DNA of 61,838 nt, filler included, from Dimorphilus gyrociliatus (Eukaryota > Animalia > Annelida): assembly GCA_904063045.1 (NCBI GenBank). It is 4 parts of 4 records of this genome, joined end to end, with 100 filler letters (N's around TTAATTAATTAA, not from the genome) between each part and the next. Parts side by side here need not be neighbours in the genome. Positions count along the whole stretch, not along the records: positions 35,005 to 53,154 come from CAJFCJ010000068.1; 3 more parts are not named here. One strand, 5' to 3'. This document shows positions 35,005-53,154 of the stretch, in pieces. The position numbers and the translations under genes were made by a program. Every line of letters begins with the position of its first letter. Position 1 is the stretch's first letter. Below the pieces are notes generated by a model. That model did not search any database. It was not told where the DNA came from and saw nothing but the letters and a program-made list of their open reading frames with translations.

Positions 35005-35338
35005 TATTTCTGATAGTTCATTTAGAGATGTTCCATCAAGAATATTTCACAATCAGCCTCCAAATACAAAATTGCTTAAAGGGAATTATGATCAACATTA
35101 GTCAATTAAACTATGAAGACATTTTGCCCATTTTAACAAACTGGAATATGCAATATGAATATATCTTTGTAATGCAAACTTAAATTCCTAACAAACAAGC
35201 TTATGGAGTAGCTCATTTTTAAAAGACAATTTGGAACTTGTAAGAATGTTATAATAGCCATTCCATTTGGCACTAAACTGATTTCATCAAGCAAAGATAT
35301 TCAAACTGGCAACTAGGAACCAAGCTACTGTTCTAGAC

Positions 35339-38197
35339 ATGACTGACATGAAAAAATTGGGATTTACAGATAATCCAACTGGAAATTCAAAATCAAAACA
35401 TCTCACAAAGAAGGCACAAGAATTTTCCATTGATTTAGTGATGAAAACATTGCAGAGAATTATTAAAGATGAGACAGAAGAGAAAATGGACAAAGATATA
35501 TCAACTAATAGGGTAATACCATTATCTGGATTTAATTTCAATCAACAATTAAATACTCAATATGTTGTTAATTTAAGCAAATATCAGATCCCTAATGATA
35601 TCAATAATTTTTTAAATCTGGGTTTAAAGTTTGTATATGAAAGTATAAAACCAAAAAAATGGAAGCAATATACATTATTTAATTTAGAAAGATTTTTTAA
35701 AAAAGTATCAGTCATTAAGAAACTAAATAAATCAACAAGTGAGGAAAATCTTAGATGTATTAATTATCAATGGATACCAAAAGGATATGAATCAAATGTT
35801 ACATGTATTGAGGAACAGGATGATGCTGATGATGATAGTGATGATGATGATGAGGATAGTGATGAAATGTTACAATTTTTTAAAGAATGCAGAAAAACAA
35901 TTCAAAATACCTTCTTTAAAGAGAACTTCAGGATTTTAAAATTTGACAAACAATTCTTTCAATCTCTGACAAAATTCCTTTCATTAAACATTGTAATTAA
36001 GCCAGCTGACAAAGGATCTTGTATTGTAATACAAAACACTGATGATTATATTTACATGTGCAATAAATTACTTTCTAATAAAAAGCAATATTCCAAACTA
36101 ACAACAAATTCTAATGAAAATGTTTGTCATAATAATTTCTTAAAAAAATCAGCATTGTATTATAAAGATTTAATTAACACATTTAGAGTTACTTTGGATG
36201 AAAAAGAATGTAAACATTTGTTAGAATCTGTCTGTTTAAAGAAAAACTCTTTTTACAAAAGAATATTTTATGGATTGCCTAAAATACATAAAGAATCAGA
36301 TCAATGGCTTCATAGTGGAAGGATTCTTAGAGGAAGACCTGTTGTTAGCAATTTAAGAACAGAATCTTATGAAATATCCAGATTTATATCACACCAACTG
36401 AAACCAATTAGTATGCTACATTCTTCATATATTGGTAATTCTCAACAACTATTGGATGAACTTAATAGAATTACAATTCCAAATGATGCTCTCTTAGTGA
36501 CTCTGGACATTAAAAGCATGTATACAAATATTGATACTTATACTGGTTTGAAAGCTATAAAATATTTTTTTGAAAAGTATCCCTCCAAGCAAAGACCTGA
36601 TAACTTTCTTATTCAACTACTAAAGTTCAACTTATATAAGAATCATTTTAAATTCTTAAACCATACATACTTACAAAAGAGTGGTTGTGCAATGGGTCAA
36701 AGCTATGCTCCAGCTTATGCAAACTTATGGATGGCTTGGGTGGAAGAAATCTACATTTCTAATATTAGGCCTAGACCTCTTTTTTACAAAAGATATTTGG
36801 ATGATATTTTCATAATTTGGACAAGCAGTATTGCTGAATTTCACAGCTATCTTCAGAAAGCCAATAACATACTGAAGAATTTAAAGTTTGAAGAAAGAAT
36901 TAGCCCTGAATCTATTAATTTCCTAGATTTAACACTCTTCAAGGGAACAAGATTTTTGTCAACAAATCAGTTGGATCATATGACCTTCTTCAAAAATTGT
37001 GAAACATTTCATCAACTTCATAAGACTTCTCTGCACCCTAAACACATCTTCAAAGGACTTTTAAAATCTCAATTCCAAAGGTTTCTTAAAAACAGCTCTT
37101 CTCCATTTCTATTCCTGCAAACTTCTCAAACTGTGATAAAATCCATTTTAAATCAAGGCTACAGCAGCAAAGAAATAAAAAAAGCAATGCTTTCAGTAAT
37201 AAAAGATCAATTGAAGAAAGAAAACTATGAAAGAATGTTGGAAGAAAATCAAAAGAAACACTTCAATATCCCAAAGAAATTGAGAGTATATTTTAACATG
37301 GCAGAAAAGATATTCTGTCCTCTAAAAATGAAATTCATTTTTAGAAAAAACTGTGTTGATTTAATCACAAAAAACTCAAAAATATTTCTACTACAATGTA
37401 AAGAATGTGGACAAATGATGTATTTCACAATACAACAGCAATATACAAATTACAGCATCTTCCAAACACTTACACACCTTTTGTCAAGAAAATATGTGGA
37501 ATTGAGGAATGTTGAGCTTGTTGAAAATTTTATCCAACATCAGCATTTTGCAGAAAATCAATTTAATATCACAATATTTCCATATGAACAATTACAAAGA
37601 GACAAATCACCAATTGAAATGAATAGACACATTTATGAGTTGAATATGAAGGATATCATGTATGACCCTTTTGGTTTAGTCAGATATACAAATTGTCAAA
37701 TTTACACAAAGCTACCATTAATTATGCCACATAGAAATGACCTGGGACCAGTCTTACAAAAGTTTTCAAAGATTTATAGAAATTTAAGTAATAAGAATTC
37801 AATATTTAAAAATATTCCTCTGATATTTGCTTTTACAAACAACATGAGTAGTTACTTTAAATTGATTCATAAAAATATATATTTCAAACAGAAACTAAAT
37901 AAATCCACTTCCTTATTTGATAAGAGTAATGCTACTGATAGAGATTCAACAGAAAAACACCAAGCCTCAATGAACAAAACTGGAACTAAGTCAATTAAAC
38001 ATTTTTACAAAAAGAAGAATACAGAGGAAACATCAACTATTAGCTTGCCTTCTCCACCAGAAAAAAGACCAAAATGTGATACAATAACAAGAAAATTCAC
38101 TACAAAGAGAAAAATAGATAATGAAACAGATGAACAACAATCAGTTGTAGAACAAAAGATTAAAAGGACAGGAAGAAGAATTAAGAAGAAAGTATAA
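35339..38197 (+). CDS. PLE reverse transcriptase ORF (952 aa) with degenerate GIY-YIG-like C-terminal domain and basic NLS-like tail
   Basis: IKPADKG, YGLPKIHK, GRPVVS, TLDIKSMYTNI, QKSGCAMG..YAPAYANLWM, YKRYLDDIF, INFLDL, HP.HIFKG; LLQCKECGQMMY, HF and DPFGL in the EN position. The true start may lie upstream. Confidence 0.92.
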   Translation: MTDMKKLGFTDNPTGNSKSKHLTKKAQEFSIDLVMKTLQRIIKDETEEKMDKDISTNRVIPLSGFNFNQQLNTQYVVNLSKYQIPNDINNFLNLGLKFVYESIKPKKWKQYTLFNLERFFKKVSVIKKLNKSTSEENLRCINYQWIPKGYESNVTCIEEQDDADDDSDDDDEDSDEMLQFFKECRKTIQNTFFKENFRILKFDKQFFQSLTKFLSLNIVIKPADKGSCIVIQNTDDYIYMCNKLLSNKKQYSKLTTNSNENVCHNNFLKKSALYYKDLINTFRVTLDEKECKHLLESVCLKKNSFYKRIFYGLPKIHKESDQWLHSGRILRGRPVVSNLRTESYEISRFISHQLKPISMLHSSYIGNSQQLLDELNRITIPNDALLVTLDIKSMYTNIDTYTGLKAIKYFFEKYPSKQRPDNFLIQLLKFNLYKNHFKFLNHTYLQKSGCAMGQSYAPAYANLWMAWVEEIYISNIRPRPLFYKRYLDDIFIIWTSSIAEFHSYLQKANNILKNLKFEERISPESINFLDLTLFKGTRFLSTNQLDHMTFFKNCETFHQLHKTSLHPKHIFKGLLKSQFQRFLKNSSSPFLFLQTSQTVIKSILNQGYSSKEIKKAMLSVIKDQLKKENYERMLEENQKKHFNIPKKLRVYFNMAEKIFCPLKMKFIFRKNCVDLITKNSKIFLLQCKECGQMMYFTIQQQYTNYSIFQTLTHLLSRKYVELRNVELVENFIQHQHFAENQFNITIFPYEQLQRDKSPIEMNRHIYELNMKDIMYDPFGLVRYTNCQIYTKLPLIMPHRNDLGPVLQKFSKIYRNLSNKNSIFKNIPLIFAFTNNMSSYFKLIHKNIYFKQKLNKSTSLFDKSNATDRDSTEKHQASMNKTGTKSIKHFYKKKNTEETSTISLPSPPEKRPKCDTITRKFTTKRKIDNETDEQQSVVEQKIKRTGRRIKKKV

Positions 38198-38393
38198 ACA
38201 TTGTAGAATTTTTAATTAGTTTGTTTTGCATATTTGTTTTGTTTCTTCAAAATTTATATTTTGTTATATAAACAAAATTATATCAATTTGTGTATTCTTA
38301 GTTTCTTTTATTCAAATGTTCATGTTGTTTTTTTTATGTAGAATATACATAACATATTATATTACATTTTTCCTTATATATAGATTTTCTAAA

Positions 38394-39434
38394 ATGGCAA
38401 ACAACCTTCCACAAAACCAAATTGAAATGATAGAAAATGATGGAAATTTAATAAACCACACTATAGATATTGAACATTTTTTACCACCTTCTTTTGAACA
38501 ATTTTTCAACTTTAGAACATTTTATAACCATCTTTTAAGATTTAAAAGAGATGACAAAAACCATCCTCCTATATTTGATGGAAATAAATTTGAAAAACTT
38601 GCAGTAGACAAAATGATAAAATTCAAAGAATTTTGTGATGAAAAAATGTGGCTTGTTCAAGAACACCAACCACATAACTTAAACAAACAACAACTTGGAG
38701 AAATAATATTAAGACAATTGAATAGCACTGATCATATTGTAAAGTTTTTCAATACAATCAAAGTTAATAGAATAAATCATCCAAATATTAATGAAATGAT
38801 GACATCTTTCACAGAGATTGGAGTGAATCTAAGAGAAGAGGAAGTTGAAAATCTTATGAAAATTCAACAGCCTGGAGTTGAATTAACAAACAATTATAAT
38901 TTGCTTCTGCTGACAGATGGCAGTTTGGGTGATTTAGATTTGCTTCAAATAGAAGATGTTAAGAGAAATATAAATTTTGGTGGAAATATTTTAATTATAA
39001 ACATTTCTGGTCTATCATTTAAAAATTGCAAAGAAATTTTATCAAAATGGAATATAAAAGCTACAGTTGTAGCCCTTCATATTCTTTTTGATATCATTAA
39101 TGATGTTGATGAGAATTTTCCAGATATTTACAAAAACAATGGAAACTTTAAAGAATGTCTCCTATTTATAAAATACAATGTTCGAAATCATATAAATAAT
39201 CAATTACCACCACCAGAAAATTTATGAAAAATGTTCACAAATGTTTTTTATATCAATAGCATTATAAGAGGAGATCCTTTTCATAGACGAATGCAGCAGG
39301 GAAAGATCTCTTCATTAAGAAATGTTGTTCAACAACTGATTTTTAATGAAATTTTAGTGAACACAAAAGAAATGATGGTTCAGCAACAAAGAAGGACTGG
39401 AAGAAGGAGATTAAATAGACAAAGATATCAGTGA
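38394..39434 (+). CDS. PLE accessory ORF2 (38394-39227) plus in-frame ORF3 (39231-39434); SGNH/GDSL-like pattern
   Basis: Same frame, separated only by TGA-AAA; LLLTDGS, INISGL, VVALHI, GDPFH; ends RRTGRRRLNRQR; splice-acceptor-like TATATAG at 38383 just upstream. Confidence 0.6.
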
Positions 39435-39970
39435 GAATTGCACAAATCATTCATATTATATATTATTGCTTTCCATGTCTTTTTTATGCAAACATATTAT
39501 TTTATATTTCATTGAAAAAACATTCATATAATAACTATGTATTCATCTTAGTGCAGGATACAAATTTTACAAACAAAAAAATAACAAAGCAGCAATTTAA
39601 TTATGTCACTTAAAAGTTAAATATATTATTGTGCAACATGCTTGTCATATTCACAACCTAGATATTGAATTATCAGTCCATATGAAAGTGAGGGAAGCTC
39701 CAGTGTTTTCATTTAAGAATCATTTTTGTTTATCTATAATATTCTGAATTAAATATGTTCTAATTGATATACTTTGAACAATTCTTTAATTAACACTATA
39801 AGATCTATCAGACAATTTGGATTTTATATTCTACTCTCACACATTATACATAACCAAACATTTAAAACAAAAAGAATTACAGCAAAAATTCATGCAAGGA
39901 AGGATACAATTATAGAATTGGTCCTATCCTCCCCTTCATGATAGTATTTAGGTTAAGCTATCCTCTGAAA

Positions 39971-40020
39971 TGACCCTGATGAGTCTTTGCTAAAGGGGAA
40001 GACGAAACCATGGTAGGTCA
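39971..40020 (+). ncRNA. Minimal type I hammerhead ribozyme
   Basis: Stem I TGACC/GGTCA, core CTGATGA, stem II GTCTT/AAGAC, GAAA, palindromic stem III CCATGG, GUA triplet with predicted cleavage after 40015. Confidence 0.92.
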
Positions 40021-40499
40021 ACCATACTTGGTTCCATTTCACTTAATACTAGATATATACTACATTAAGACATTAAATCATCAATCAACTTGAGATGTGA
40101 AGACTACTTGATTCATATTGTGCAATAAGTTCTTACTCTAGCAACTCCTCAATAGCTACACCAACCCTTAGCCAAAGCTTGGTTATAAGTGTGTGTGCAC
40201 TTTTGGGATTACCAGGCTGTACTGATTGTGCTAATCCCTAACCCCAAGACCTAACCCTGAGTTGTGTGAGTGGCCTAACCCTAATCCTGTGGACATTTTC
40301 TCTTGTGGACATTTTCTCCATAAACCTTTGAAATGGTGCAGAAATTGCAAAATGTGCCAGCATAATAACAAGACAAATGCCCAAAAGATATTTCATGATT
40401 TGAAAGTAGCTTTCTTAATCAATTTGAATAATGTGAAAGTTGAAAATGATATGATATAAATTTGATATAAATATATGACAATTTCAGGACATTTTGCCA

Positions 40500-40858
40500 C
40501 TCAATAATTTGTAATAGCAGGTTGCCAAATTACCAAACTAATGTCCAATGTTGAAAGGGTAGAGTGCTGTCTAAGTAAGGTTGTTTCCAGTTGATCTTTC
40601 CAGTTTAAGGTAATACAGTTGGACTATAACAGCAAGGGTTTATATGCATGTAGGTTTGTCTCCAATATACAATCATCACTTTACTGTTAGTGGTCTATGA
40701 ATAATATGTTACAAAGTTCAACACTTGAGATAATTAATTAACCATACTTTGGCCAAACCCTTTCAAAAGCTTATCAATCACAACTTGGCCAACACTTAGT
40801 GGCACTTAAAGTTGAACCTTATGTATGACCAGACAAGGTCAGAATTTGGCTAAATGGT
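40500..40858 (-). mobile_element. Degenerate LTR fragment related to families A and C
   Basis: GCAGGTTGCCAAATTACCAAAC, CAATCATCACTTT, GTTACAAAGTTCAACA and TTGGCCAA blocks. Confidence 0.75.
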
Positions 40859-41095
40859 GATTGTATTTCTCTCAAAGGTTTTTGAATAAGTAGTACACAG
40901 GTATAAAATAGTAACAGATTAATTTTTGTTTACAGCCTTCAGAAGCATATTACACAGTATTGAGTTATTGAAGTCTTAAACTGGTTTTTTTGCTATTCAT
41001 TTTATCATAAACTCCATATTGTCAAAAAAATATAAAAGATATATATATGTATATATATCAACTAGAATATTTTATACTTTCACACATTTCAAATC

Positions 41096-41401
41096 ATGAA
41101 ATATCTTTTGGGCATTTGTCTTGCTATTATGCTGGCACATTGTGCAATTTCTGCACCATTTCAAAGTGAATTGATGGAGTTATTGGATGGAAGAGATGAA
41201 GGATTGATGGAAACTCTTCTTATGAGAGAATTATTGGAGAAGGTATTATATATAGAAAATTTATTCCATAAGCTTTATTTGTACTTTTCCTTTCAGCGAT
41301 ATACTAGCAGAAATTCTTGCCTACATTGCAAACGACAATTTTTTGAGAATTGTAATTCAAGAAGATCATATTGTCTTGCAACCTATAATATATCTTTCTA
41401 A
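41096..41401 (+). CDS. Small secreted prepropeptide (signal, acidic pro-region, KR, 4-Cys mature peptide); intron 41243-41296
   Basis: Splicing gives ...RELLEK/RYTSRNSCLHCKRQFFENCNSRRSYCLATYNISF*; GT-AG 54-nt intron. Confidence 0.75.
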   Translation: MKYLLGICLAIMLAHCAISAPFQSELMELLDGRDEGLMETLLMRELLEKVLYIENLFHKLYLYFSFQRYTSRNSCLHCKRQFFENCNSRRSYCLATYNISF

Positions 41402-41563
41402 TATCAGAAAGAAGGGGAGAAAAGCTTATGTAAAATTAACAAAAGCTCCACACATTAAGGAAAAACACTAGAATGCATAATTTTTTGAGAGTAGAATGTT
41501 TTTATTACATCTGATATTTTTTCTCTTTAATACATATTTTACAAGATTTATGATTACTTGTAT

Positions 41564-41830
41564 TGTACTTTGTTGTATTGTGATTGTAGGAATTTTGTTC
41601 TCATCCCAAACATATTTGTCCATACCCCTCATTTAATATTACACCAAAGCACTTGTCCAAATAGAACCTCAACAAATGAATGATATTTGTCCAAAGTTTT
41701 ATATCAAACTTTCAACAAAAAGCCAGTGTTTTCCAAATAAGATATGTATTGAATATTCTGAGCTTTTATCTCTATCTGTACCCAGCTCACAATGCTATTG
41801 TTAAGTATTCATATTAAATAGTATTGAATT
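41564..41830 (-). mobile_element. Partial LTR family D copy
   Basis: TGTACTTTGTTGTATTGT start and further blocks match 43661 onward. Confidence 0.7.
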
Positions 41831-42707
41831 AAGTCTATGGTTTTCTAAAAGAGCATCTATATTGAACTGAAGTATCACAATTTATTTTTAAACATTCATT
41901 TTTTCACTCACACAGTACTGTCACATATTTTCCCTTTTATACCTCTCACAGTTACCCTTGTCATTTAAGTGTGGGCCTGATTCTACTCATCTTCAATATT
42001 ACTAAAAAGATTGAGGGAAACCTCAATTGTAATTCAGACCACATGTTTTTCATTGCTGATTGTAAAAAGTGTAATTGGGCTATGGCTAGCTTCACCATAT
42101 CTCCACTACATAGAATGTCTGGCTCTTTTGCAAATACCAACACTCTGAATCTATTAGAATGTTGGCCATCCCCATGGTGGCATATTAAAACAGTCTTCAA
42201 TAAACCACAAAACAAATTCTCTATTGTGAATAACATAGAGAGCCTGAACAACAGCAATGACACAATTCTCACCATGGCCAATAGCTGGGTGGGGGATGAT
42301 CAGGATAGTAGTTTTGCAGGTATTAATCTCCTATTGGAGATACAGAGAGAAATTGACAGTGAATGAAAATTAATAGGGCTAGTTATTGGCTGAGTAGGGA
42401 TTGAACACCTCTTTAATGGGGAACAGGTTGTGGTAGTTGGCAGTGAACAAACAGTTCCCCAACAAAAACACCACATCTGGTTCTTATATCCTAACCCTAA
42501 GCTATAGCCCCCTAAAAAGATACAAATTAGTGAAACTTTACAACCAACCCTAACCTAAGATAATGGAACCAACACTTAACTTAGCAGAGAAGAAGGTACA
42601 GACTGGACAGACATGGGACCTGTTCAGAACAAATTGTTAAATAAAAAATGGGGTAATTTGTGGGGAGACACCTCTCTATGAGAGAACAGATGGTTGACAG
42701 TTGGCAG

Positions 42708-43342
42708 TGTACTGCTCTTGCTGGCAAAATCTATGCGTTTGCAAGTTATAACAATACTGGTTCTACTCGAACCTTTAAACAAATGTTTAAATTAAAACAG
42801 TTTATTCGCAATAATAATACTTAAGCAAGTAACAATATGAGAGTTCGATAGCAGAGTAGATAGTTTGTAAAAGCAGGTTGCCAAATTACCAAACTGTCTT
42901 CCAATGTTGAGGAGTAGATGGATGGTTCCAGTGGAGGTTGTTTCCAGATGATTTTCCCAGGTCCTTGGGTCCAGATGGAAGCTGCATGCCAAATGAGAAT
43001 AATGAGGATTTATATACTTTGAGGTTTGTCTCTGACATCCAATCATCACTTTACAGTTGCCAAAATGTGTAGTTCATATTTATCTTTAGTAACAGGATGT
43101 TACAAGGTTCAACATTTAGGAAGGTTAATTGAATTATAACTTGGCCACACCCTAGGCAAGTTAATTAAATTATAACTTGGCCAAACCTTTATTGGTAATT
43201 AAAGATGAGCCTTCAAGCTGACTAATCAGACTTATGTTTGGCCAATGTTATAGCATTTTCTTGCGTAGGTTTTAAGATGTACATGTATATGTTGCATAAA
43301 ATAATAGAGTTCAAGCATGTAAAATATAACCAAAGTTGTACA
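42708..43342 (-). mobile_element. Solo LTR family A with 4-bp TSD GCAG
   Basis: GCAG at 42704-42707 and 43343-43346; fixes the LTR boundaries at TGTAC...GTACA. Confidence 0.95.
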
Positions 43343-43660
43343 GCAGTGAACAAAAGTTCCCCAACAACATGGGTCTACAGACCTTATGCTACATAGTACA
43401 CAAAGGATATATATATATCAATGAGTTAGTTTTGATCCAAAAAAATCAGTGCTGTGGCAAAAATTCCCAATTCTGGGCCGTTTAGGAGTTTCGTTATGCG
43501 TCATCCTAGATGTTTCAATTTTGTTGGAGGTGATAGAGCTCAAAAAGAGCTTTTCACTGATATGCTACACGACCATGTAGCTTTTACAGTTCAGGAGTGG
43601 CTGAGCTTCGAAAATCAAAAATTTTCCAAGTTCAGGTAGAAAAATAAAAATATTTCTTTC

Positions 43661-44594
43661 TGTACTTTGTTGTATTGTAATTGTAGGAATTTCTGGTTCG
43701 TCACAACTGTAATTGTCCTTTCCAATCATTTACCAACTTGCCAAAGTACTGGTCCAAATAGAACCTTTAAAGTTCGTCCACAAATAGTCTAACAAAGGCA
43801 ATTTCGGTAGAAATTGATTAACAAAACACCAGTATTTCGTCCAAAGAATATGTATTGAGTAAAATGAGCTTCTAGTTCTAAACAAGCTAGTTTAAACAAC
43901 TAGCTGATGGTTAGAAAACTGAACTATCAACTGTTAATTTCATAGGGTTTATATACTCTTTTAAGGGTTGATAGTTCACAAATTTCAATGTTCACAAAAA
44001 CAAAAGTAACATTTGAAGACAAAGAAAAGTTGTAAATATGGTCATGTTTTTATTGTTTTCCTCTTCTAAATAATAGTTGAATTTCGAAGGTTGGAGAGTT
44101 GCATAAGATGTAACAATTTTAGTAGGACAAGTCCAACAATCAAGAAAACATGTAGATTGTATATTTGACCGTTTTTATATTCTACCTTAATAATGATATT
44201 CAATTGATTGAGTTAGTAAATTTAGCATCAGCATATAAGGAGGAAGTATATCTGATTAATGCATGTTAAAAAGAACAGTATTGTATATACAATACTGTTG
44301 AATAGTGAATATAATCTAAACTTAGAATTGAAGCATAATTGATAATTAATTGAACTAGTTTTAGTTCGAAATCATAAATTTATGGATTAATAAATTGTAA
44401 TATTAATGCTAGGTTGCAAATAGCAAATATTCTTATATAATTCAATAGGTTTTATTACTGCATAATGTGTATGCACTGCCCTATACGAAACTAGGTCACT
44501 ACTGCTTATCTTTATCAGTGCTATCTGCATAGTACAATACTGGTTCAATACTACTTCTCTATTGTAGAATATAGCTGACGAATGTATGTGTACA
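43661..44594 (-). mobile_element. Solo LTR family D (934 bp) with 5-bp TSD CTTTC
   Basis: CTTTC at 43656-43660 and 44595-44599; the homologous repeat near 60830 lacks this insert. Confidence 0.85.
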
Positions 44595-46139
44595 CTTTCT
44601 ATCTTTCCGACGTAGGGGCAAGCTTGGATTCAAGTTTGAAAGCAATCTGACGATTTTGAAAAATTGGCCTTCACTGAGGCTCTGGACTTGTAAAGATTTC
44701 TCGAAAATCATTAATTTTCTAAGTTCTTTGTCAGGTTAATTACCTGTAAAAACGTTACATTCGCCTGGGTACTTAGAAAGATTTTGGAAAAAATATTTCC
44801 GAAAATATTCTAAGTCCAGCCTAACACAGTGTTAGGTTTTGGACTTAGAAAAATTTCGACTGAAAAAAGTCGATAAATTTTTCAAAAATATTCTAAGTCC
44901 AAACTGGAGGTGAAATCACCCCTTATCTTAGATTCAGTTATATTTCATGGTGAGGTAATGAATAGGGCTCTGGACTGCCCCATGCAAATAGGATTGGCCA
45001 TATATGTACAGAGAGGAAGGAACATAGAATTGAATCTAGGTCTTCTTCTGTTACATTTTATGAAAAGTGACTTACCTGATTGTTATACCTGCGATTTTTG
45101 AAAGGTTACCCTCTAATTACTATAGAACGTAGGGTCGAGATACTGGTAATAGAGTCTAAGGCTGCCAGTCAGCCATCCTCACCTACCACCGTTAACTTCA
45201 AAGCTCCATAGCTCCGCAACAGCTGGGCCGATTTCTTTCAAATTTTGCACAGTTGCTCAGTTCAATTAGATCTAGCACTGTGTAAAATTTCATAACAATC
45301 GGAGCAAGTTGAAATTTCAACTTTCGTCAGTGGTCGACTTGCTTTACTGACCACCAAGTAGGTGATTTGTAGTGAAAAAAGTGTGGGATTGAACCAGTAC
45401 CTACCCTAAGGTATAGTAAGCCTCTCAGAGATCAGTCTGGTGGCAATCTAACCAGCCACTTTTCCCCTCTCACTTGATAAAGGAGGAATACCTCCGAAAT
45501 ATTGTGAGTTTTAATCTGGTGACATTGTTTTAGTTGCTAAATACAGGTTCTCTTCACCTTGTGGAGAATTTGTAAGTGGTTTTGTTGGAGATACAGTTAC
45601 AGCTTAGGCTGGGAATTGCTACTCAAGATAGCAACTCCTCAATACTACACCAACCCTTAGCCAAAGCTTGGTTATAAGTGTGTGTGCACTTTTGGGATTA
45701 CCAGTCTGTACTGATTGTGCTAATCCTAACCCAAGACCTAACCCTAAACCCTAACCTAACCCCAAGACCTAACCCTAACCTAACCCTTTTATTTAAAAAG
45801 AAAAAGGTATATAAAAATGAAAACAAATAAATCTCTATAATCTAGAATTAAAAACATATGAAATGAAAAATAATGATAAAGTCTATATAATTGTTTCAAA
45901 AACTGCTTCAGAAGTTTCAAGAGACAAGTTTGTTCTTTTTATATTCTTTGAATATGAAGTCTATGAATTGGAATTTTGCAATCCTAAATGTACTTTCAAC
46001 TCTAGTAGTAGAAAGTTAGCAGTCAAAGAAAAAACACACCAAAATCAAAGTTTAAAACAATTTCATACATTAATTAAGTATATGTCATTTAAAAAATATT
46101 AATTATTATAATGAATTATATAAGAAAATGTATTATTTT

Positions 46140-46760
46140 TTAACGCACCATAACTCAAAAACTATAAGAGATAATTAAAATCTGTAAAAAGATTTGAAAT
46201 TGGCATATCAATATTAGTCTATGTACAAAATTTGAATACTCTGTGATTATTAGTAAGAAGTTTAGTTTTTGATGATGAATATTTCAATGTTAAAAACAGA
46301 GTTTATATATAACATTCATAGGAATGCATATCTTAGCAACTACTGGACCAATTTTAATCAAATTTGAAGTAAATTATTGTCAGAATAAATATTACCAATT
46401 AGAAATATATTCGTTCTATTATTCAATATATCCTATTTAAAAAATAATATTATATACTATAAATTATATATGGAAAATGCATTAAACTTTAACGCACCAC
46501 AACTCAAAATTATGAGAGATAGTTGAATTCTGTAAAGAGATTTGAAATTAGCATATCGATATTAGTCTATGTACAAAATTTGAAAGCTCTGTGATTATTA
46601 ATAATAAATTTAGGTTTTTTTGTGACGAATATTTTCTTCTTTATATTAGCCTGTAATAGTGTTACAGTACAACATTCAAAAGAATCCATATCTCAGCAAC
46701 TACTAGGCCGATTTTGATCAAATTTGAAGCAAAATTATTGTCAGAAGATGTTTTATAAAC
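46140..46760. repeat. About 350-bp tandem module (two copies; diverged third copy ~48770-49180)
   Basis: TTAACGCACC..AACTCAAAA and ATCTCAGCAACTACT.G.CC.ATTTT.ATCAAATTTG recur in each copy. Confidence 0.8.
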
Positions 46761-46989
46761 TTTATAAAAGAATAAATAAGAAAATATGTAAGACGGTTGT
46801 TTAAAATTGAAAACTAAAATTTATTAGAAAAAGGTAGAAAAAACTACAAAAGTTGAAATACACAAAGATATATATATATAGAAAAAAAGTACAAGAAAAA
46901 GAGAAAACTGAATATAAAAGTTAAAAACATATATACAAATAAAAATGAAATAGAAAATATTGTTTCTAAACCAATTTCTTTTCCAAAAA

Positions 46990-48182
46990 AACATATTTTA
47001 TAAATTTAAGAAACATTGTCTGCTCTTTTTTATATTTGTTTGGGTCAAAATCAATTAAATGAAAGCCACTCCAACCCAAATTATTTTCTATCCTACTTGG
47101 AAAATATTTTTTTAAAAAGTAGATATCCTTTGGCATATTAGGTTTTCACTTTAAAAAGTCAACAATTTCAAATTTGAGTTTCTTTGGATATTCTTTCAAA
47201 ATCACAATAATTTTTTTATCCTTTAAAGGCCACTCAACCAGCAAATGTGGAAAAGTATTGAATGATAACTTTTTGAATAATAATAATTGAACATTTTTAA
47301 TATTATTTTTTTGAAAAATTTTTTAAAATCTGGAACTTTAATGTCAGTAAAATAGTCTGATATAATTACAGTTTCTGTACAAAAATCCATTGTGGGGCAA
47401 ATGTTTTTAAAATTTTTCTTTGTTTCCTTTTTGGACCTAATTGCTAAATGATTGTTGTTTTCCAAATTAAAATACCTTTCATTAGCATCTTTAATTTTTT
47501 TACAATTTTCATTATCATTTTCATTTCAATTTGATATTGGTATTGGTGATGAAGTTGATGTGGGTGCAAAATGGCTTGTTTCATTCTGGTTTTGATTATC
47601 AATTATCAATGTTGAATTGAGTTGTTCATTTACTTCTGGTTCAACAAGTTGATCAAAATACATTTCTTTGATTTCAGCAATTACATCATTAAATATTTCA
47701 GCACCCTCCATACAATTGGGTTTACTCTTTAGTACTTGATAAATGACATATGGTAAGGAATTCTCCACTTGTCAACAACTTGCAGGAGTTTTAAGAAGAG
47801 GTTTTAAATAAAAAAATTGATTTAAGTCAATTTGTTCTTTGTAATAATTCTTGATCTCAGTATTGACATTCTCTTGAAATTCCTCAAAGTGAAGTTTGAT
47901 TCTGTTATATAGCTTTTTGTGTTCATAAATTTTTAAATTTCCAAGTAATGGATAACTCAAAATATGACTATTGAAAAGAGTCTCAAAAGATTTTCCAAAA
48001 TTATTGTTCATTGAATTAAAAACAATTAATAGAATATGCTTGATTTGTATCAAGAGACTATTATAAGTAAAACTTGTAAATGTTGGGTTAATTTTTTCTG
48101 GATGGGGATATCTTTGAAAAGTCATATTCAGTAGCTGAGAAAAGGAAAAAACACTCTCAACATATTGAACAAAAAGCAACAA
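46990..48182 (-). pseudogene. Decayed long ORF of unknown, possibly SGNH-like, product
   Basis: ORFs 47772-48182, 47526-47768 and 47223-47465 are one frame broken by two TGA codons; VIISDY, ILFHI and GFHL motifs. Confidence 0.45.
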
Positions 48183-50071
48183 AAATAAGCATTTTTAAAC
48201 AATAAATATATAATGAAATTTTGTAAATAGATTTGTTTTTGGCGTATGGAAATTAATCTATGTACAAACTTTCTAAATAAATTAGTTTTTTACCTGATGA
48301 ATGTTATTATATACCACCTATGTTGAGTAGATTGGCAAAAAATAAACCAAATTTCAAATCTCTATCTTAATTATTAACGGAATTAAAATTTTTGTGACGA
48401 AAATAAAATATAGGCTGATATTTGATATACTGTCCAAAAGTAACTTATCACTCTTGATAGAAATTATCAATAATTGAAAGGGAAATAATTGTTAAGAATT
48501 ATTAAAAAGCAATAGACAATAATCTATATATTTTTATAGATACAAACTTACAAAAATTAATTACAAACAATGAATTAAATGGGGTAAATTAACAAATTTA
48601 CTTACATTTTGTTGTGTTCTATAGCAGACAGAGTGACCAAATAACATTGAGTTCGTAATATTTAAACTACTTAACAGACACCTCTGTGGTACATTTTTTT
48701 TTAATATATTGCTAAACTTGAAAAAAAAAATTTTTGTTTTAAAAAAAAAGGGTTCATACTAAACTTTGATTCACTGTCGCTCGGAAATGGTGAGAGATAA
48801 TTGATTTCTGTAAACGGATTTGGAATCGGCATACCCAAATTACTATATATACTGAATTTCAAAGCTCTAACTTGAATATTAAGAAAAAAAGTTTTTTTCT
48901 GACGAATATTTTTGTTATATATAAGGTTATACAGTGTTTATATATAGCGTTCATAGAAAAAACTAGATCTCAGCAACTACTGGGCCGATTTTGATCAAAT
49001 TTGAACCAAAATCATTGTCAGAAAAAGTTATTGGCTGTTGGCAATACATTCGTTATATCAAAAACATATTTCCAACTGAAAAAATAATATTATTGGTAAT
49101 GAATTGTATAAAGAAAATGTAATAAAGTCTATCACAATAACTGTGAAAGATAATTGATTTCTGTAAAAAAATTTATGATTGGCATAATAATATCAGGTTT
49201 AAGTACAATTAAAAAGATATAATTAATTATTTCCTGTTGAAAAAATATTTGTAAATATTATTGAAAATTCTGTAAGTGTTTGGAGAAAACTATGTAGTAC
49301 ATGGTATAAGTTTAAGTATAAACTGGTAGGTAAGAAGAAATTTACATATACAGTTTCCTCTCTTTCTCCCTCTCTCTCTCTCTCTCTCCCTCTCTTTCTT
49401 TCTTAAGAAATTTCTAATCTAATTTCTTATTGTAAATCCAATAAGATCACGTGACAAAAATGTAAAATAAATAGTCAATTGCCTGATTATTTCTCTTCTT
49501 TTTATAAGACTTTTTTAATTAACTACAAAGTAGTAATTAAGTAAGTTAGGAGGAGAAGAGTATACTGCAAAGCAACATATGGCGCGCCACTGCAAATATT
49601 GATTGAATATAACCTATTATCATACCCCTGACCTTTCAAGGAAAACAAAAGATTATAGATTTACAATACTTGACATAAAAAAAAATATTCAGTTACATTT
49701 AGAAGAAGATTCTCTATTTTAAAATTTTCAATGTCAAGGACACACTTTCTAAGAGATTTTACAAACAAATAATAAGTAATATATTATCTTTCATTCCAGC
49801 TATACATTAAAAAATAGATGATAGATGTCTCTAGTGTGTATGAGAAATTCTCTCCTCACAAGCGTTACAGTGGATAATCTTCATTGGGAGAATTGATTGT
49901 TCTTGCTTTAAAGTTTAGGTATTTGATAATGTTTAGAGTTTGGAGGATTTCTATTCATTTCAAATTCCATATTGGTATAGGTTGGTAAAACTTCATAGAC
50001 GTTTGGATCTTCAATTTCCAAATCTGTGTAGAGATTATTAAACACAACATTTTCTGAATGTTTAGATGAAT

Positions 50072-51448
50072 TTAAATCAAAATTTTACTACTGGCTCCAT
50101 CTACATTACAAAATTTATCCGAATTGGTATTGAGGCATTGTTGATTGAAATACATTTGATTTTGTATTTGTTCTCCTCCTCTTGACTTTTTTCGTTCTCG
50201 ATAAAGATAAATAATGAGGCTGATAGCAAAGGACAGAAAAGCTAGAACCAATATAGAAGCCAACAGTGGAATATACCAGGGATATGGTTATGGTTGGGGT
50301 TAGGGTTAGGGTTAGGTAGGTTACTTTTTGATTTAGCTTAGTTAATGTTGTTGAATTTTGATTAGGGTTTGGCCTAGTTGAAGCTAGGTTAAAGACAGCG
50401 TTTGGCATGGTTGAAGCTAATTTACTGATAGGTTTAGGCCTAGTTGAAGCTATTTTATGGATAGGGTTAGGCCTAGTTGAAGCTAATTTACTGATAGGTT
50501 TAGGCCTAGTTGAAGCTATTTATGGATAGGGTTAGGCCTAGTTGAAGCTATGTTATGGATAGGCCTAGTTGAAGCTAGGTTAAAGATAGTGTTTGGCATG
50601 GTTGAAGCTAATTTACTGATAGGTTTAGGCCTAGTTGAAGCTATGTTAAAGATAGGTTTAAGCCTAGTTGAAGTTATTTTATGAATAGGGATAGGCCTAG
50701 TTGACTTTGCCTTAGTCGATGCTGAAATATTTGAAAGAGAGCAATCTTCGCCATAATAATTTGTTCGGCATTTTGCCCAAAATTCTAAATTAAAGACACT
50801 TCTTGAATTCTGAAAATATTTTCCCCTTAGCCAAGATTTTTTCCTTTCCCCATTTGGCCTAGTTCGTAAATGAAATTGGAAAGTATCAATGAAATCAGGT
50901 TGGCTGTAGATATCGTGATCGCGAACGTCTATATCAACAATTAATCCACCCTGAAATTGTTAATAGGATGATAGAAGAGAGGAATAATTAAATGAAAACT
51001 GGTAAACAAGCCTGATATTCCCTGTCAATTTCTATATGATAAGGTTGAAGACCAGGAAAGTGTGTAATTGTATAATAATTATTTTTTTCAAATGTAACCA
51101 TGCGACCAAGAGAGCATGTTTTGCTGTTAGGGTTAGGGTTAGGGTTAGAACCTTTATTCTATGTTTTTTACTTACTTTTCATATAGTTTGGAGAGCAAAC
51201 ATAAAAGATAGGATCGCATATTTTTTTTACTATCAGGAAGAAATGGTCCAGTATCGCAAATACCTCCACTATAATCTCTTCCATTTCCTCTCCATTTCAA
51301 TAGATTTACATAAAAATCACCTACAATTTCACCATCAACTCTCCATTGCTGATCAACATGAATTTATATTTAACTATGTATATTATATTTATATATTTAC
51401 ATGAATAATCGAAATTATTACAAAGTAGAAGGTACAACAAATTTTCAT
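50072..51448 (-). CDS. Type I membrane protein: Delta/Serrate-like N-terminal C2 (MNNL-like) domain, 11-aa repeat stalk, TM helix; several homopolymer frameshifts
   Basis: Signal MKICCTFYFVIISIIH, G.DYSGGICD..CDPIFYVC..C.LG, VDIDVRDHD..DFIDTF, C..NYYGEDC, STRPKPISKLA-type repeats, WYIPLLASILVLAFLSFAISLIIYLY-RERKK; ~52-60 nt introns. Confidence 0.65.
50370..50705. repeat. 33-bp coding minisatellite (GGCCTAGTTGAAGCT core)
   Basis: About ten units visible directly. Confidence 0.9.
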
Positions 51449-51809
51449 CCCTCCAGAGAAATAATCAATACTCAAGATAAAGATGAGAGAGAGAGAGAGA
51501 GAGAGAGACAGACTAACAGATAGAGAGAAATTGACTATTTATTTTTACATTTTTGTCACGTGATCTTATTGGATTTATGATAAGAAATTAGATTAGAAAT
51601 TTCCAACATTATAATTTATTTATTAACCATTGAAAAAGTGCATTAATTACAAACAATTACAAACTAGATAATATATTTGCAGATACTCAATTAATTCATT
51701 TATCTCTGTAATTTATATTTTTTCAGTAATCGCTAAATTTTATAAGGTTATTAACCATGAGTAATTCTATGGAAGGCCATAGAAAGAGTACCTGAGAAAG
51801 ACTGACCCT

Positions 51810-52314
51810 TGTAACATCCTGTTATGAAAGACAATAGAGAACCACACCTTAATATTGTTAAGTCTATTGCTCTAGAAGACGAACAATTGACTTAATGCAA
51901 TTAGCAAGCAACTTAATGCAATTACCAATGATATAAATGGTATTTGCCCCACCCATTGCAAACCAATGATTGGCCACTTCCAACTCATGAAAACAGATAT
52001 AAACAGCTAGATCCTCAGTCTCAGAGAGGAACCAACCACCTGACTTCCCCTCCATTTCAACTCTACCTACAACCTTCTTGGGACAAGACAACCCTTCTCA
52101 GGACCAGTACCCCTCTGGATCAACATTGGTTCTGCAAATTGGCCTAAGGTGCTCTTGAGACCCTCCTGTATTATCTTAACTTCATTCTGCTAGCTGCTTA
52201 AGTATTTTAGTTTGAATAAATTGTTAAAATTTAAACATTGTTGTTTAAAGGTTCGACTAGAACCAGTATTGCTTAATTCCCTTGTTTATGTATCAACCAA
52301 GCAAAAGTAGTACA
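51810..52314 (+). mobile_element. 5' LTR, family B (related to A); 5' boundary uncertain
   Basis: Shares TGTAACATCCTGTTA, GTTTAAAGGTTCGA.TAGAACCAGTATTG and the GTACA end with LTR A; followed by PBS and gag. Confidence 0.8.
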
Positions 52315-52318
52315 AACT

Positions 52319-52336
52319 TGGCGCAGTCAACAGGAT
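52319..52336 (+). promoter_or_regulatory. Primer-binding site TGGCGCAGTCAACAGGAT, tRNA-Ser-like
   Basis: 18 nt starting with TGG, 4 nt after the LTR end; resembles the tRNA-Ser PBS TGGCGCAGTCGGTAGGAT of the Drosophila 17.6/297 group. Confidence 0.75.
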
Positions 52337-52372
52337 GCAATTTCAATTCAATTATTCTACTAAACTAAAGAT

Positions 52373-53146
52373 ATGGCAACTGGAGGAAATGGTGATAGAG
52401 ATGATGTTAGTTCAGAGAGTACAAACAGCCCACAAACTCCAAGAATCACAATCCAGGAAGGAAGAGCCACTGACTATCAACAGAAATTACTCAATGATTA
52501 CCATTTATTGGTAGAGGATATGAAGAGAAACAATATTACCTTGCCCATGGCTTATGATACTGGACAAGATCCTCCTAGGAATAATCCAAATCCAGACATC
52601 AAGACCCTTATTCAAACACTTCGAGCAGCTTGGGATCATCCTCAACAGACCATACTCAGGGCTTATGATGGATCAAGGGAATGCTCTAAATTTAAAGAAG
52701 AATTTAATCAAGCATGTCAAGCATATGGATGGATAGAACCAGACATAATTAAAGCAAATCTTATGGACTATTTAACTGGACCTGCAAGAGATTTGGTATT
52801 GGCTCTGGATGGAAATCCTACTATTGGAAGAATTTGGGAAGCTCTTCATAATGAGTTTGACCCTGATCCCAGAGAATATCAGGAAAGATTAAATAACCTC
52901 AAGCAAATGAATGGAGAAAGTATAGTACAGTTTGTCAATTGAGCTAAACAACTAATCAAAAATCTCTCTCCTCCCAGACCATTAAACCCAGCTTTTGAAA
53001 GTACCTTGAAGGAACTAAAATTAATGGAAATTATACAGAAAGGATTACAAGCAGATATTTTACATTTGGTAAATACCCTGCACCCTAGATTGCATTCACT
53101 AGCACAACTATATGAAGCTGCTAGGAATGCAGAAATCACACCTTGA
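52373..53146 (+). pseudogene. Ty3/gypsy gag (capsid), with in-frame TGA at 52940 and 53144, running to the gap
   Basis: YDGS....F..EF...C..YGW, L..YLTGPA..L, IWEAL..EF, LKQ..GESI..F; the frame continues through the stops. Confidence 0.8.
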
Positions 53147-53154
53147 AACTTAAC

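Follow-up and report, generated by a model that had tools for sequence, protein, structure and literature searches.

Can a Penelope-like element (PLE) move without a working nuclease of its own? The question is raised by a locus of the annelid Dimorphilus gyrociliatus (assembly GCA_904063045.1), which lies in a window of 61,838 nt, the whole stretch of joined genome parts under study; our analysis was confined to the piece at positions 35005-53154 (CAJFCJ010000068.1). Our best explanation, which as a whole we rate slightly above an even chance, is that region 35005-40290 represents the last five kilobases, on the 3' side, of a Neptune-affiliated PLE with a defective nuclease, one that uses telomeric or other free 3' ends for priming. 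The published account of this genome assigns 4.9% of it to transposons, concentrated in gene-free islands, and its repeat annotation, in the parts of that paper covered here, is silent on PLEs and telomeres (PMC7854359). The Pfam profile RVT_1, used in the reverse transcriptase (RT) screen of that paper (PMC7854359), misses the RT described below.

Reverse transcriptase and GIY-YIG-like domain

The first open reading frame (ORF1) encodes a PLE reverse transcriptase with all RT motifs present (Table 1). The intact 952-codon frame reported in the initial annotation held up: it measures 971 codons from stop to stop, far above the 142 codons of the longest open frame in 300 mononucleotide shuffles of 35005-40130, and the GC content over the element is 27-30%. 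A homology search with ORF1 gave 452 matches at E≤1e-3, and the best 120 of them (≤1e-72) are nearly all ~550-900 aa long, with a GIY-YIG motif in 113 of the 120. The best relative of ORF1 is P0001 (D. gyrociliatus DgyrCDS14925, 1212 aa, locus L001), with 43% identity over 85% of the query; a second relative, P0002 (1327 aa), comes from an 8.3-kb Logan contig of runs ERR14224704-6. The other matches are ordinary ~740-aa GIY-YIG PLEs that align over the RT core alone. RT identity is 50-56% among the trio formed by ORF1, P0001, and P0002, compared to 38% to canonical PLEs. Pfam searches with ORF1, ORF2, and the piece following the ORF2 stop gave no relevant match, and PDB sequence searches gave no match.

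Downstream of the RT, the GIY-YIG-like domain has changed at the positions that matter for cutting. In the alignment with eight canonical PLEs, the five catalytic positions (two Tyr, Arg, Glu, and Asn) are all replaced in ORF1, P.GLN has become PFGLV, and the CX2-5CxxC zinc-finger linker between the RT and the endonuclease (EN) was not found in ORF1, P0001, or P0002, which bears out the degenerate EN described initially. P0001 and P0002 have likewise lost these five residues, with replacements that differ among the three proteins. Because the two nearest relatives are in the same state, the loss of nuclease catalysis appears to be an old feature of a small clade, not the decay of one copy. C..C, H.H, and P(F/Y)GL are kept in the EN-like region, and a post-EN block (IPFVxPY...AY.RN.NLK) is common to EN-bearing (EN+) relatives. 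Since identity within the trio (28-35%) is near that among canonical PLE nucleases (38%) despite the lost catalysis, the EN-derived domain has probably been kept for some non-nuclease role, its inactivity being judged from its residues.

To place the element, we used a 119-sequence RT tree built from unnamed database matches, without labeled Neptune, Athena, or Coprina references. The trio forms a clade (SH-aLRT 100, stem 1.15) that attaches on the tree side of 31 linker-bearing (Neptune-type) elements, away from 81 elements without the linker. The best reading of this tree of unlabeled matches is that the element is a Neptune-affiliated PLE. As a minor feature of ORF1, a (GAT)n-like run at 35819-35865 encodes an acidic DDADDDSDDDDEDSDE stretch between conserved N-terminal motifs, absent at that position in P0001 and P0002.

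ORF2 and the SGNH-like accessory domain

A T-rich spacer containing an AG and a co-oriented second ORF (ORF2) follow ORF1, as had been described; the 345 codons initially given for ORF2 turn out to be 277 codons, a TGA, and 67 more codons in frame (Table 1). No hammerhead, telomere-like tract, or other recognizable element end lies between ORF1 and ORF2 (38198-38393). Joining the sole GT at the end of ORF1 (38192) to the AG at 38383 yields ATT TTC TAA, an immediate stop, so this splice would not fuse the two ORFs; the intron suggested for the spacer has no support.

ORF2, its post-TGA continuation, and the frameshifted fragments upstream of ORF1 were each searched as separate pieces. Residues 95-275 of ORF2 match residues 250-421 of P0001 with 30% identity (BLASTP, E 5e-12) and match P0002 with E 1e-6; by sequence comparison, this part of ORF2 appears to be a divergent, TDGS-type paralogue of the SGNH-like domain that is fused to the RT in the relatives, so that the second SGNH-like module of the initial annotation stands. 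The SGNH-like domain that it placed at the N terminus of the RT is likewise present, but it is frame-broken and lies mostly upstream of the ATG, at 35006-35338. Three-frame translation of this remnant gives the fragments ISDSSFRDV, IMINISQL..WNMQYEYIFV, and NVIIAIPFGTK, then LDMTDMKKLGFTDNPTG in the ORF1 frame; tblastn of P0121/P0122, two relatives introduced below, matches 35085-35171 and 35282-35473, and the remnant is colinear with approximately residues 320-450 of the fused P0001. Just the last ~25 residues of the domain lie inside ORF1, and P0001 and P0002 have ~460-550 additional N-terminal residues.

A profile search of 1.84 billion representative proteins identified five true relatives of the accessory domain, namely, P0001, P0002, P0121 (226 aa), P0122 (472 aa), and P0123. 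Since this exhaustive search gave these five alone, the family seems to be rare; a further search added P0125, which led to locus L005, 7-28 kb from the start of the 3.2-Mb D. gyrociliatus scaffold CAJFCJ010000003.1. The homology search with ORF2 alone gave no match in its length band, an exact-protein look-up found no record of ORF1, ORF2, or a 509-aa ORF of L005, and the Pfam SGNH/GDSL/Lipase_GDSL profiles had no match at E≤1 in ORF1, ORF2, P0001, or P0122. An earlier structure model from three sequences (pLDDT 49) was too poor for use by itself. The AlphaFold (AF2) model of P0122 residues 262-472, with six sequences including ORF2 in the alignment, reached a pLDDT of 78.9 and a pTM of 0.77. 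SGNH/GDSL hydrolases (TesA, PAF-AH, GDSL lipases, and acetylxylan esterases) make up nearly all of the 50 best Foldseek matches of this model in the PDB, the top ones with E 8e-5 to 1e-3 and TM 0.4-0.55. The five-stranded parallel alpha/beta fold of SGNH hydrolases is therefore supported for the family, as modeled on P0122.

The family divides into two subtypes. P0122 (IGDSS), P0121, P0001, and the broken upstream copy (ISDSS) are of the GDS subtype; ORF2 (LTDGS, with Gly at the position of Ser), P0002 (ITDET), P0123, and P0125 are of a TD(G/E/T)x subtype without an aligned nucleophile Ser. Block V reads GKHLT in the GDS type, and in the ORF2 region a GDPFH is present beyond the TGA alone. Judged from these residues, catalysis by ORF2 is doubtful. 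The post-TGA continuation aligned at the last helix of the domain family with an E value that is not significant (hhalign, 0.14). An RTGRR basic tail ends both ORF1 (38165-38194, KIKRTGRRIKKKV) and the continuation (39393-39410, QQRRTGRRRLNRQRYQ); it may be a localization or RNA-binding motif, and its presence in both hints that the continuation is, or was, translated. Selenocysteine incorporation or other recoding at the ORF2 TGA found no support, no search aimed at recoding having been made. The idea that ORF2 begins a further element copy in tandem was ruled out: ORF2 is only ~30% identical to the remnant and P0001, the 3' block comes after ORF2, and there is no element end between ORF1 and ORF2 either.

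Could the locus simply be a dead relic, in which the degenerate EN, the broken N terminus, and the ORF2 TGA mark the degeneration of what was formerly a canonical element with RT and GIY-YIG, with no unusual biology involved? The three or more frame changes and stops in 35006-35338, the in-frame TGA at 39225, and the lack of any exact or near-identical protein on record would fit such a history. Yet a frame of 952 codons stays open at 27-30% GC, where shuffles reach 142 at most, the RT motifs are intact, and the EN substitutions are common to two relatives with intact ORFs of 1212 and 1327 aa. Moreover, other genomic units match the 3' block at 93-99% identity (see below), which suggests recent activity of the family. 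We consider a relic highly improbable.

The SGNH-like domain also occurs in other settings. L004 10001-11365 and L005 10001-11656 each hold a TD-type SGNH-like ORF (P0123 and P0125, respectively; 78% identical) and, after it, a conserved 99-aa ORF (87% identical between the loci), and neither locus has an RT within 10 kb; the first 22 codons of P0123 derive from a long terminal repeat (LTR)-like repeat that truncates it. A third family, on the minus strand of both L005 (22-1551) and L004 (14970-15810), is 61% identical between the two loci and combines a long N-terminal region with a TD-type SGNH-like domain in a 509-aa ORF; in L004 a short CCCTAA-like tract lies 470 nt downstream of it on the same strand. 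A weak likeness of 47772-48182 (minus strand) to this 509-aa ORF was dropped, as tblastn gave it no support. P0002 (SGNH-like domain, RT, and dead EN) stands head-to-head with P0122 (coiled coil and GDS-type SGNH-like domain), ~790 nt apart, in two of the three runs ERR14224704-6, the contig of the third being too short to show the layout. P0121 is a stand-alone 226-aa GDS-type ORF on 1- to 1.4-kb contigs (27-29% GC) from 10 samples (L002 and L003, Logan contigs SRR23372229 and SRR24081689), and it resembles a transcript from a related element, or else a domesticated copy, of another AT-rich animal.

Hammerhead ribozyme

The hammerhead motif that had been placed 1.8 kb past the RT stop was recovered 1.78 kb past the ORF1 stop, and the full descriptor had one match in the piece and none in 2,000 dinucleotide shuffles. 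The core CTGATGA starts at 39976, helix I has 5 bp (39971-75/40016-20), helix II has 6 bp, and helix III is a palindrome, ACCATGGT (ACCAUGGU), of the dimer type. With a slash at the predicted cleavage site, the RNA reads TGACC-CUGAUGA-GUCUUU(GCUAAAG)GGGAAGAC-GAAA-CCAUGGU-A/GGUCA. The features given for metazoan PLE hammerheads in the passages of the source covered here (a 4-6-bp helix I, a long helix II, a short helix III that is palindromic, and a cleavable NUH) are all seen in it (PMC4209133). Rfam had no match at E≤1 over the piece, nor over L001 and L004, and a 201-nt Rfam search scored Hammerhead_3 at 16.3 bits, below the threshold of 48.5; such a miss is expected because minimal PLE hammerheads have an unstable helix III.

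Across four hammerhead subfamilies, 49 of the 50 ungapped hammerhead columns are invariant and changes are confined to loop 2; in the flanks, between one third and over half of the positions differ among the subfamilies. The alignment contains no covariation. From this pattern the hammerhead appears to be under strong constraint, and self-cleavage is predicted. A covariance model of the hammerhead block scored 155.8 bits in the window, 146-157 bits for eight copies in L005, and 50 bits for a cut copy there; its search of the whole window found no further hammerhead, with one 16-bit match at 49605-49691 (E 0.13). As a separate observation, an invariant box at 39920-39945, CCTCCCCTTCA, is largely complementary to the helix II strand AAGGGGAAG (39995-40003) in the window and all L005 copies, and RNAalifold pairs the two; this predicted pairing may be an alternative fold that keeps the ribozyme inactive.

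Hammerhead arrays ending in telomeric repeats

The initial annotation had made its reading depend on ORF2 and the hammerhead recurring beside other copies. As to the hammerhead, nine further copies of the block lie on the minus strand of L005, in RT-less arrays with periods of 626 and 698 nt plus one single unit. The window element was the one RT-bearing copy whose 3' DNA could be read, the assembly of L001 having a 3.2-kb run of N immediately 3' of the P0001 RT ORF. The window block is 92.9% identical to three 626-nt units, 98.7% identical to a fourth that is cut by the locus edge, and 75-84% identical to five more.

Three L005 arrays end at the same nucleotide, ACAAAAA/CCTAACCCTAA, and continue on the same strand into 45-105 nt of (CCTAAC)n, and internal units read CCTAATCAGAAG at the exact point where the array ends turn telomeric. 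The arrays lie 7-13 kb from the start of the 3.2-Mb scaffold, where the units face away from the scaffold end and have (CCCTAA)n 3' of them, a geometry to be expected had RNA been copied onto a G-strand overhang at a left chromosome end. The window element has the layout of an L005 array end, with the hammerhead block, the box AAGTTCTTACTCT, a ~90-nt segment, and a CCCTAA tail. The element is likely the autonomous partner of these hammerhead arrays. Adjoining the last telomeric tract of the arrays, L005 15016-15662 holds an 89-nt satellite of 6.4 copies (94% matches).

Alternatively, the telomere-like tracts might be incidental, and the element might be an ordinary intrachromosomal PLE that nicks its target through an unorthodox GIY-YIG-like site or with a nuclease supplied in trans. 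On this account the EN-like region, kept at a near-canonical level of identity and with C..C, H.H, and P(F/Y)GL retained, would be functional somehow; furthermore, the piece has telomeric tracts of both orientations beside unrelated repeats, and no telomeric tract lies near P0001 on L001. However, neither the linker zinc finger nor any of the five catalytic residues is kept, their replacements differ among the three proteins, and it is hard to credit chance insertion with joining three independent L005 array ends to telomeric repeats at the same nucleotide. Thus, we regard a nicking element as rather improbable.

The 3' end of the element

In the window element, the terminal segment between the hammerhead block and the tail is not that of the L005 units. 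Positions 40148-40235 are 99% identical to 45629-45726, and the latter copy, which has no hammerhead, is 96.7% identical over 120 nt to 40139-40258. Upstream of it, 45470-45614 resembles L005 12110-11961 (minus strand), a different repeat. Altogether, the 18-kb piece contains seven telomeric tracts in both orientations.

This raises the possibility that the locus is a composite of three neighbors: a PLE without its own 3' end, a stand-alone SGNH-like ORF2, and a separately inserted retrozyme unit with its tail. TD-type SGNH-like ORFs do exist without an RT within 10 kb (P0125 on L005 and P0123 on L004), the hammerhead block is found in RT-less tandem units, the similarity of the window unit begins only at 39883, the terminal ~90 nt come from yet another repeat, and on the 8.3-kb P0002 contig no co-oriented ORF was called within 1 kb past the RT ORF. 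Against three separate insertions, only 196 nt and no element end separate the co-oriented ORF1 and ORF2, the domain of ORF2 is the same one that P0001, P0002, and the upstream remnant have joined to the RT, and the RTGRR basic tail is common to ORF1 and the ORF2 continuation. In addition, ORF1 would miss the 3' hammerhead that, in the parts of the sources covered here, is reported for nearly all PLE clades except Naiads and most Chlamys (PMC8557442, PMC4209133), and sharing of the block is what would be expected of an autonomous partner, retrozymes being reported to derive from PLE terminal regions (bioRxiv 10.64898/2026.07.22.740005). A composite is unlikely in our view, though lent some weight by the single readable RT copy and by the occurrence of stand-alone SGNH-like ORFs.

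Proposed mechanism

How, then, would a nuclease-defective PLE of this kind move? An RT without a working nuclease would use a preexisting 3'-OH, chiefly the G-rich TTAGGG overhang or else an end that is broken or exposed. Pairing of the RNA, through its CCCUAA-like 3' tail, with the chromosome end would then let the RT copy the RNA onto that end, a step modeled on proposals for Athena, Coprina, and Terminons (PMC6431247, PMC8557442). The hammerhead would trim read-through or multimeric transcripts, and mobilization of the short hammerhead units would rely, in trans, on the same machinery. The SGNH-like proteins would serve as accessory ribonucleoprotein or membrane-associated factors, as proposed for the ORF1 esterases of long interspersed nuclear elements (LINEs). 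It was the initial annotation that suggested movement without an own nuclease, and the telomere-type tail, which that annotation does not include, strengthens the idea.

Several observations weigh against priming on free ends, besides those told above in favor of the other explanations. The window element is the single RT-bearing copy with readable 3' DNA, and the colinearity of ORF1, ORF2, hammerhead, and tail rests on this one copy. Its tail is short, degenerate, and templated, and lies ~220 nt from the ribozyme, compared to immediately adjacent in Terminons. The terminal ~90 nt are unlike those of the L005 units and common to the other repeat (45629-45726), so that the junction could be a chimera or two adjacent insertions. 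The surroundings are a transposon-rich island with telomeric tracts running both ways, not a demonstrated chromosome end. Finally, with an in-frame TGA in ORF2 and a broken N-terminal domain, this copy may be inactive.

If the element does prime on free ends, it is tempting to go one step further and propose that an annelid PLE lineage from Neptune-type ancestors independently turned to attaching at telomeres or free ends in the manner of Athena and Terminons, with a noncatalytic GIY-YIG domain and a duplicated SGNH-like gene, and that it drives retrozyme arrays whose placement on telomeric repeats uses a constant pairing site of 5 nt, CCUAA. We hold this wider proposal tentatively, a little short of an even chance.

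Comparison with known elements

The comparisons in this section draw on the passages of the cited reports covered here. The initial claim of an undescribed PLE architecture was overstated, since esterase-bearing Neptune-like PLEs, EN loss inside EN+ clades, and 3' ends with a hammerhead and telomeric repeats have all been published. Terminons, of the Athena group, are multi-ORF, nuclease-less PLEs of rotifers with GDSL ORFs, and their 3' end carries a hammerhead and then telomeric repeats in reverse complement (PMC6431247); canonical Neptune-like PLEs of fish and mollusks have likewise been noted to bear esterases (PMC5408684, citing Arkhipova 2006); the Neptune-like MjPLE01 of kuruma shrimp has lost its EN within an EN+ clade (PMC8557442); and retrozymes are reported to derive from PLE terminal regions (bioRxiv 10.64898/2026.07.22.740005).

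Like the element described here, Athena, Terminons, and Coprina have more than one ORF and no working nuclease, the latter being judged from its residues in our case (PMC6431247, PMC5408684, PMC8557442). Athena and Terminons also share with it the order of 3' hammerhead and then reverse-complement telomeric repeats (PMC6431247), as well as head-to-tail arrays separated by telomeric tracts (PMC6431247, PMC5408684, PMC8557442), and Terminons have accessory GDSL/SGNH esterase ORFs, some of them without catalytic residues (Athena-L) (PMC6431247, PMC5408684, PMC8557442). There are differences, however. Athena and Coprina are wholly without a GIY-YIG domain, whereas a dead one is kept here after the RT, and our RT groups with linker-bearing EN+ elements, in a tree that had no Athena references. 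Terminons reach up to 40 kb, compared to ~5-6 kb and two ORFs here, and their tail adjoins the ribozyme; the host here is an annelid with TTAGGG repeats, whereas Athena and Terminons belong to bdelloid rotifers and Coprina to fungi, protists, and plants.

Regarding Neptune-like PLEs, the nearest EN+ relatives bear the CX2-5CxxC linker and the post-EN block is common to both, whereas the trio, which has no linker, branches off separately on a long stem (1.15). MjPLE01 deletes its EN, and the trio keeps a dead one. Two esterase-like modules and a telomere-type tail further set the window element apart from Neptune-like PLEs, as compared by description only. With non-LTR retrozymes, the L005 repeats of 626 and 698 nt share their head-to-tail arrangement, one minimal type-I hammerhead in each, and a ribozyme block common to the 3' region of a PLE (bioRxiv 10.64898/2026.07.22.740005; PMC4209133). 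Arrays that end in telomeric repeats at a fixed nucleotide, as in L005, were not found reported for retrozymes in these passages, and the window holds a single unit on a coding element, not an array. The ORF1 esterases of CR1, L2, and RTEX LINEs resemble the accessory domain in that PAF-AH subunits are among the structural matches (PMC3905857). They belong with another RT class, however, whereas here the RT is that of a PLE, a second module lies downstream of it, and the nucleophile Ser is not kept in the ORF2 type. For the combination of a retained dead GIY-YIG domain, an SGNH-like module duplicated after the RT, telomere-capped hammerhead arrays, and an annelid host, we found no published description within this literature.

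PLE reverse transcriptases are the closest relatives of telomerase, and, among living systems, nuclease-less PLEs that attach to chromosome ends serve as the main model of how a telomere-maintenance enzyme could have arisen from a retroelement. To our knowledge, such end-attaching, nuclease-less PLEs have so far been well described in animals only in rotifers. If our proposal is true, D. gyrociliatus would provide a second, independent animal case and the first outside rotifers; a change from cleaving internal targets to the use of free ends would be shown to be recurrent, and its intermediate steps would become testable. The element retains a nuclease vestige and has recognizable, known EN+ relatives, and it would then show the transition from intrachromosomal to terminal retrotransposition caught in the act. 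It would also link an autonomous PLE directly to retrozyme arrays and telomeric repeats, in a 74-Mb genome that is easily assembled end to end.

Coordinates and neighboring repeats

Table 1. Features of the element and telomere-like tracts in the piece analyzed (window coordinates)
Feature	Position	Strand	Details
Upstream SGNH-like remnant (GDS type)	35006-35338	+	Three frames, in-frame stops; cut by left edge of piece
ORF1	35339-38197	+	952 codons, intact; N-terminal PLE motifs, RT, GIY-YIG-like pseudo-nuclease, post-EN block, basic tail RTGRRIKKKV
RT core and thumb	35996-37057	+	IKPADKGS to LHPKHIFKG; alignment with eight canonical PLEs
RT catalytic motifs, intact	36503-36535; 36683-36712; 36794-36820	+	LDIKSMYTNID; GCAMGQSYAP; YLDDIFIIW
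GIY-YIG-like domain without catalytic residues	37379-37687	+	KIFLLQCKECGQMMYF where canonical elements have (V/I)YLIxCxxCxxxYVGET
T-rich spacer	38198-38393	+	196 nt, 53% T; AG at 38382-38383
ORF2	38394-39227	+	277 codons and TGA (39225-39227); ATG at 38394
Same-frame continuation of ORF2	39228-39434	+	67 codons from 39231; GDPFH, basic tail RTGRRRLNRQRYQ
Copy-specific 3' untranslated part	39435-39882	+	No match in other D. gyrociliatus loci
Hammerhead block	39883-40147	+	Upstream box GGTCCT..CCTCCCCTTCA, downstream box AAGTTCTTACTCT; shared with tandem retrozyme-like repeats
Type-I minimal hammerhead	39971-40020	+	Helix I TGACC/GGTCA, core CUGAUGA...GAAA, G10.1-C11.1; predicted cleavage after A40015
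Terminal ~90-nt segment	40148-40235	+	Length and position as in L005 units, sequence different
Degenerate C-strand telomeric tail	40236-40290	+	CCCTAACCCCAAGACCTAACCCT...CCTAACCCTAATCC; ~220 nt past hammerhead cleavage site
Second terminal segment and telomere-like tail	45629-45787	+	11 CTAACC-like units (TRF)
Other telomeric tracts	42489-42560, 45404; 50278-50316, 51126-51148		First two C-strand, last two G-strand

The rest of the piece is rich in repeats. At 42708-43347 lies a repeat of ~640 nt that is 98.9% identical to two D. gyrociliatus contigs, with an inverted, diverged copy at 52178-53135; in L004 it adjoins minus-strand gag/pol-like ORFs, and a 189-aa ORF at the right edge of the piece (52373-52942) matches the gag-like side. 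Given the ORFs that it adjoins, the 640-nt repeat looks like the LTR end of a recently active LTR retrotransposon. ARAGORN found no tRNA-like sequence near 45390. A repeat family occupies 46073-46752 and 48197-49208; its members, ~350 nt long and dispersed or in tandem, are AT-rich, 70-80% identical, and without any coding signal. In the region 49358-51603, the two G-strand telomeric tracts, the second of which is perfect for 3.8 units, flank a 33-bp satellite (50366-50704, ~10 copies); the region is bracketed by 97% identical inverted repeats (49407-49467 and 51543-51603) and by (CT)n and (GA)n runs, and its telomeric orientation at 50-51 kb is reversed relative to the tracts at 40-46 kb. Immediately beyond the element, 40326-40405 and 41087-41166 form an inverted repeat (98% complementary, arms 681 nt apart) in which each arm encodes a signal-peptide-like start, MKYLLGICL.IMLAH.AISAPFQ; it may represent the first exon, in duplicate, of a gene for a secreted protein, or else belong to another repeat.

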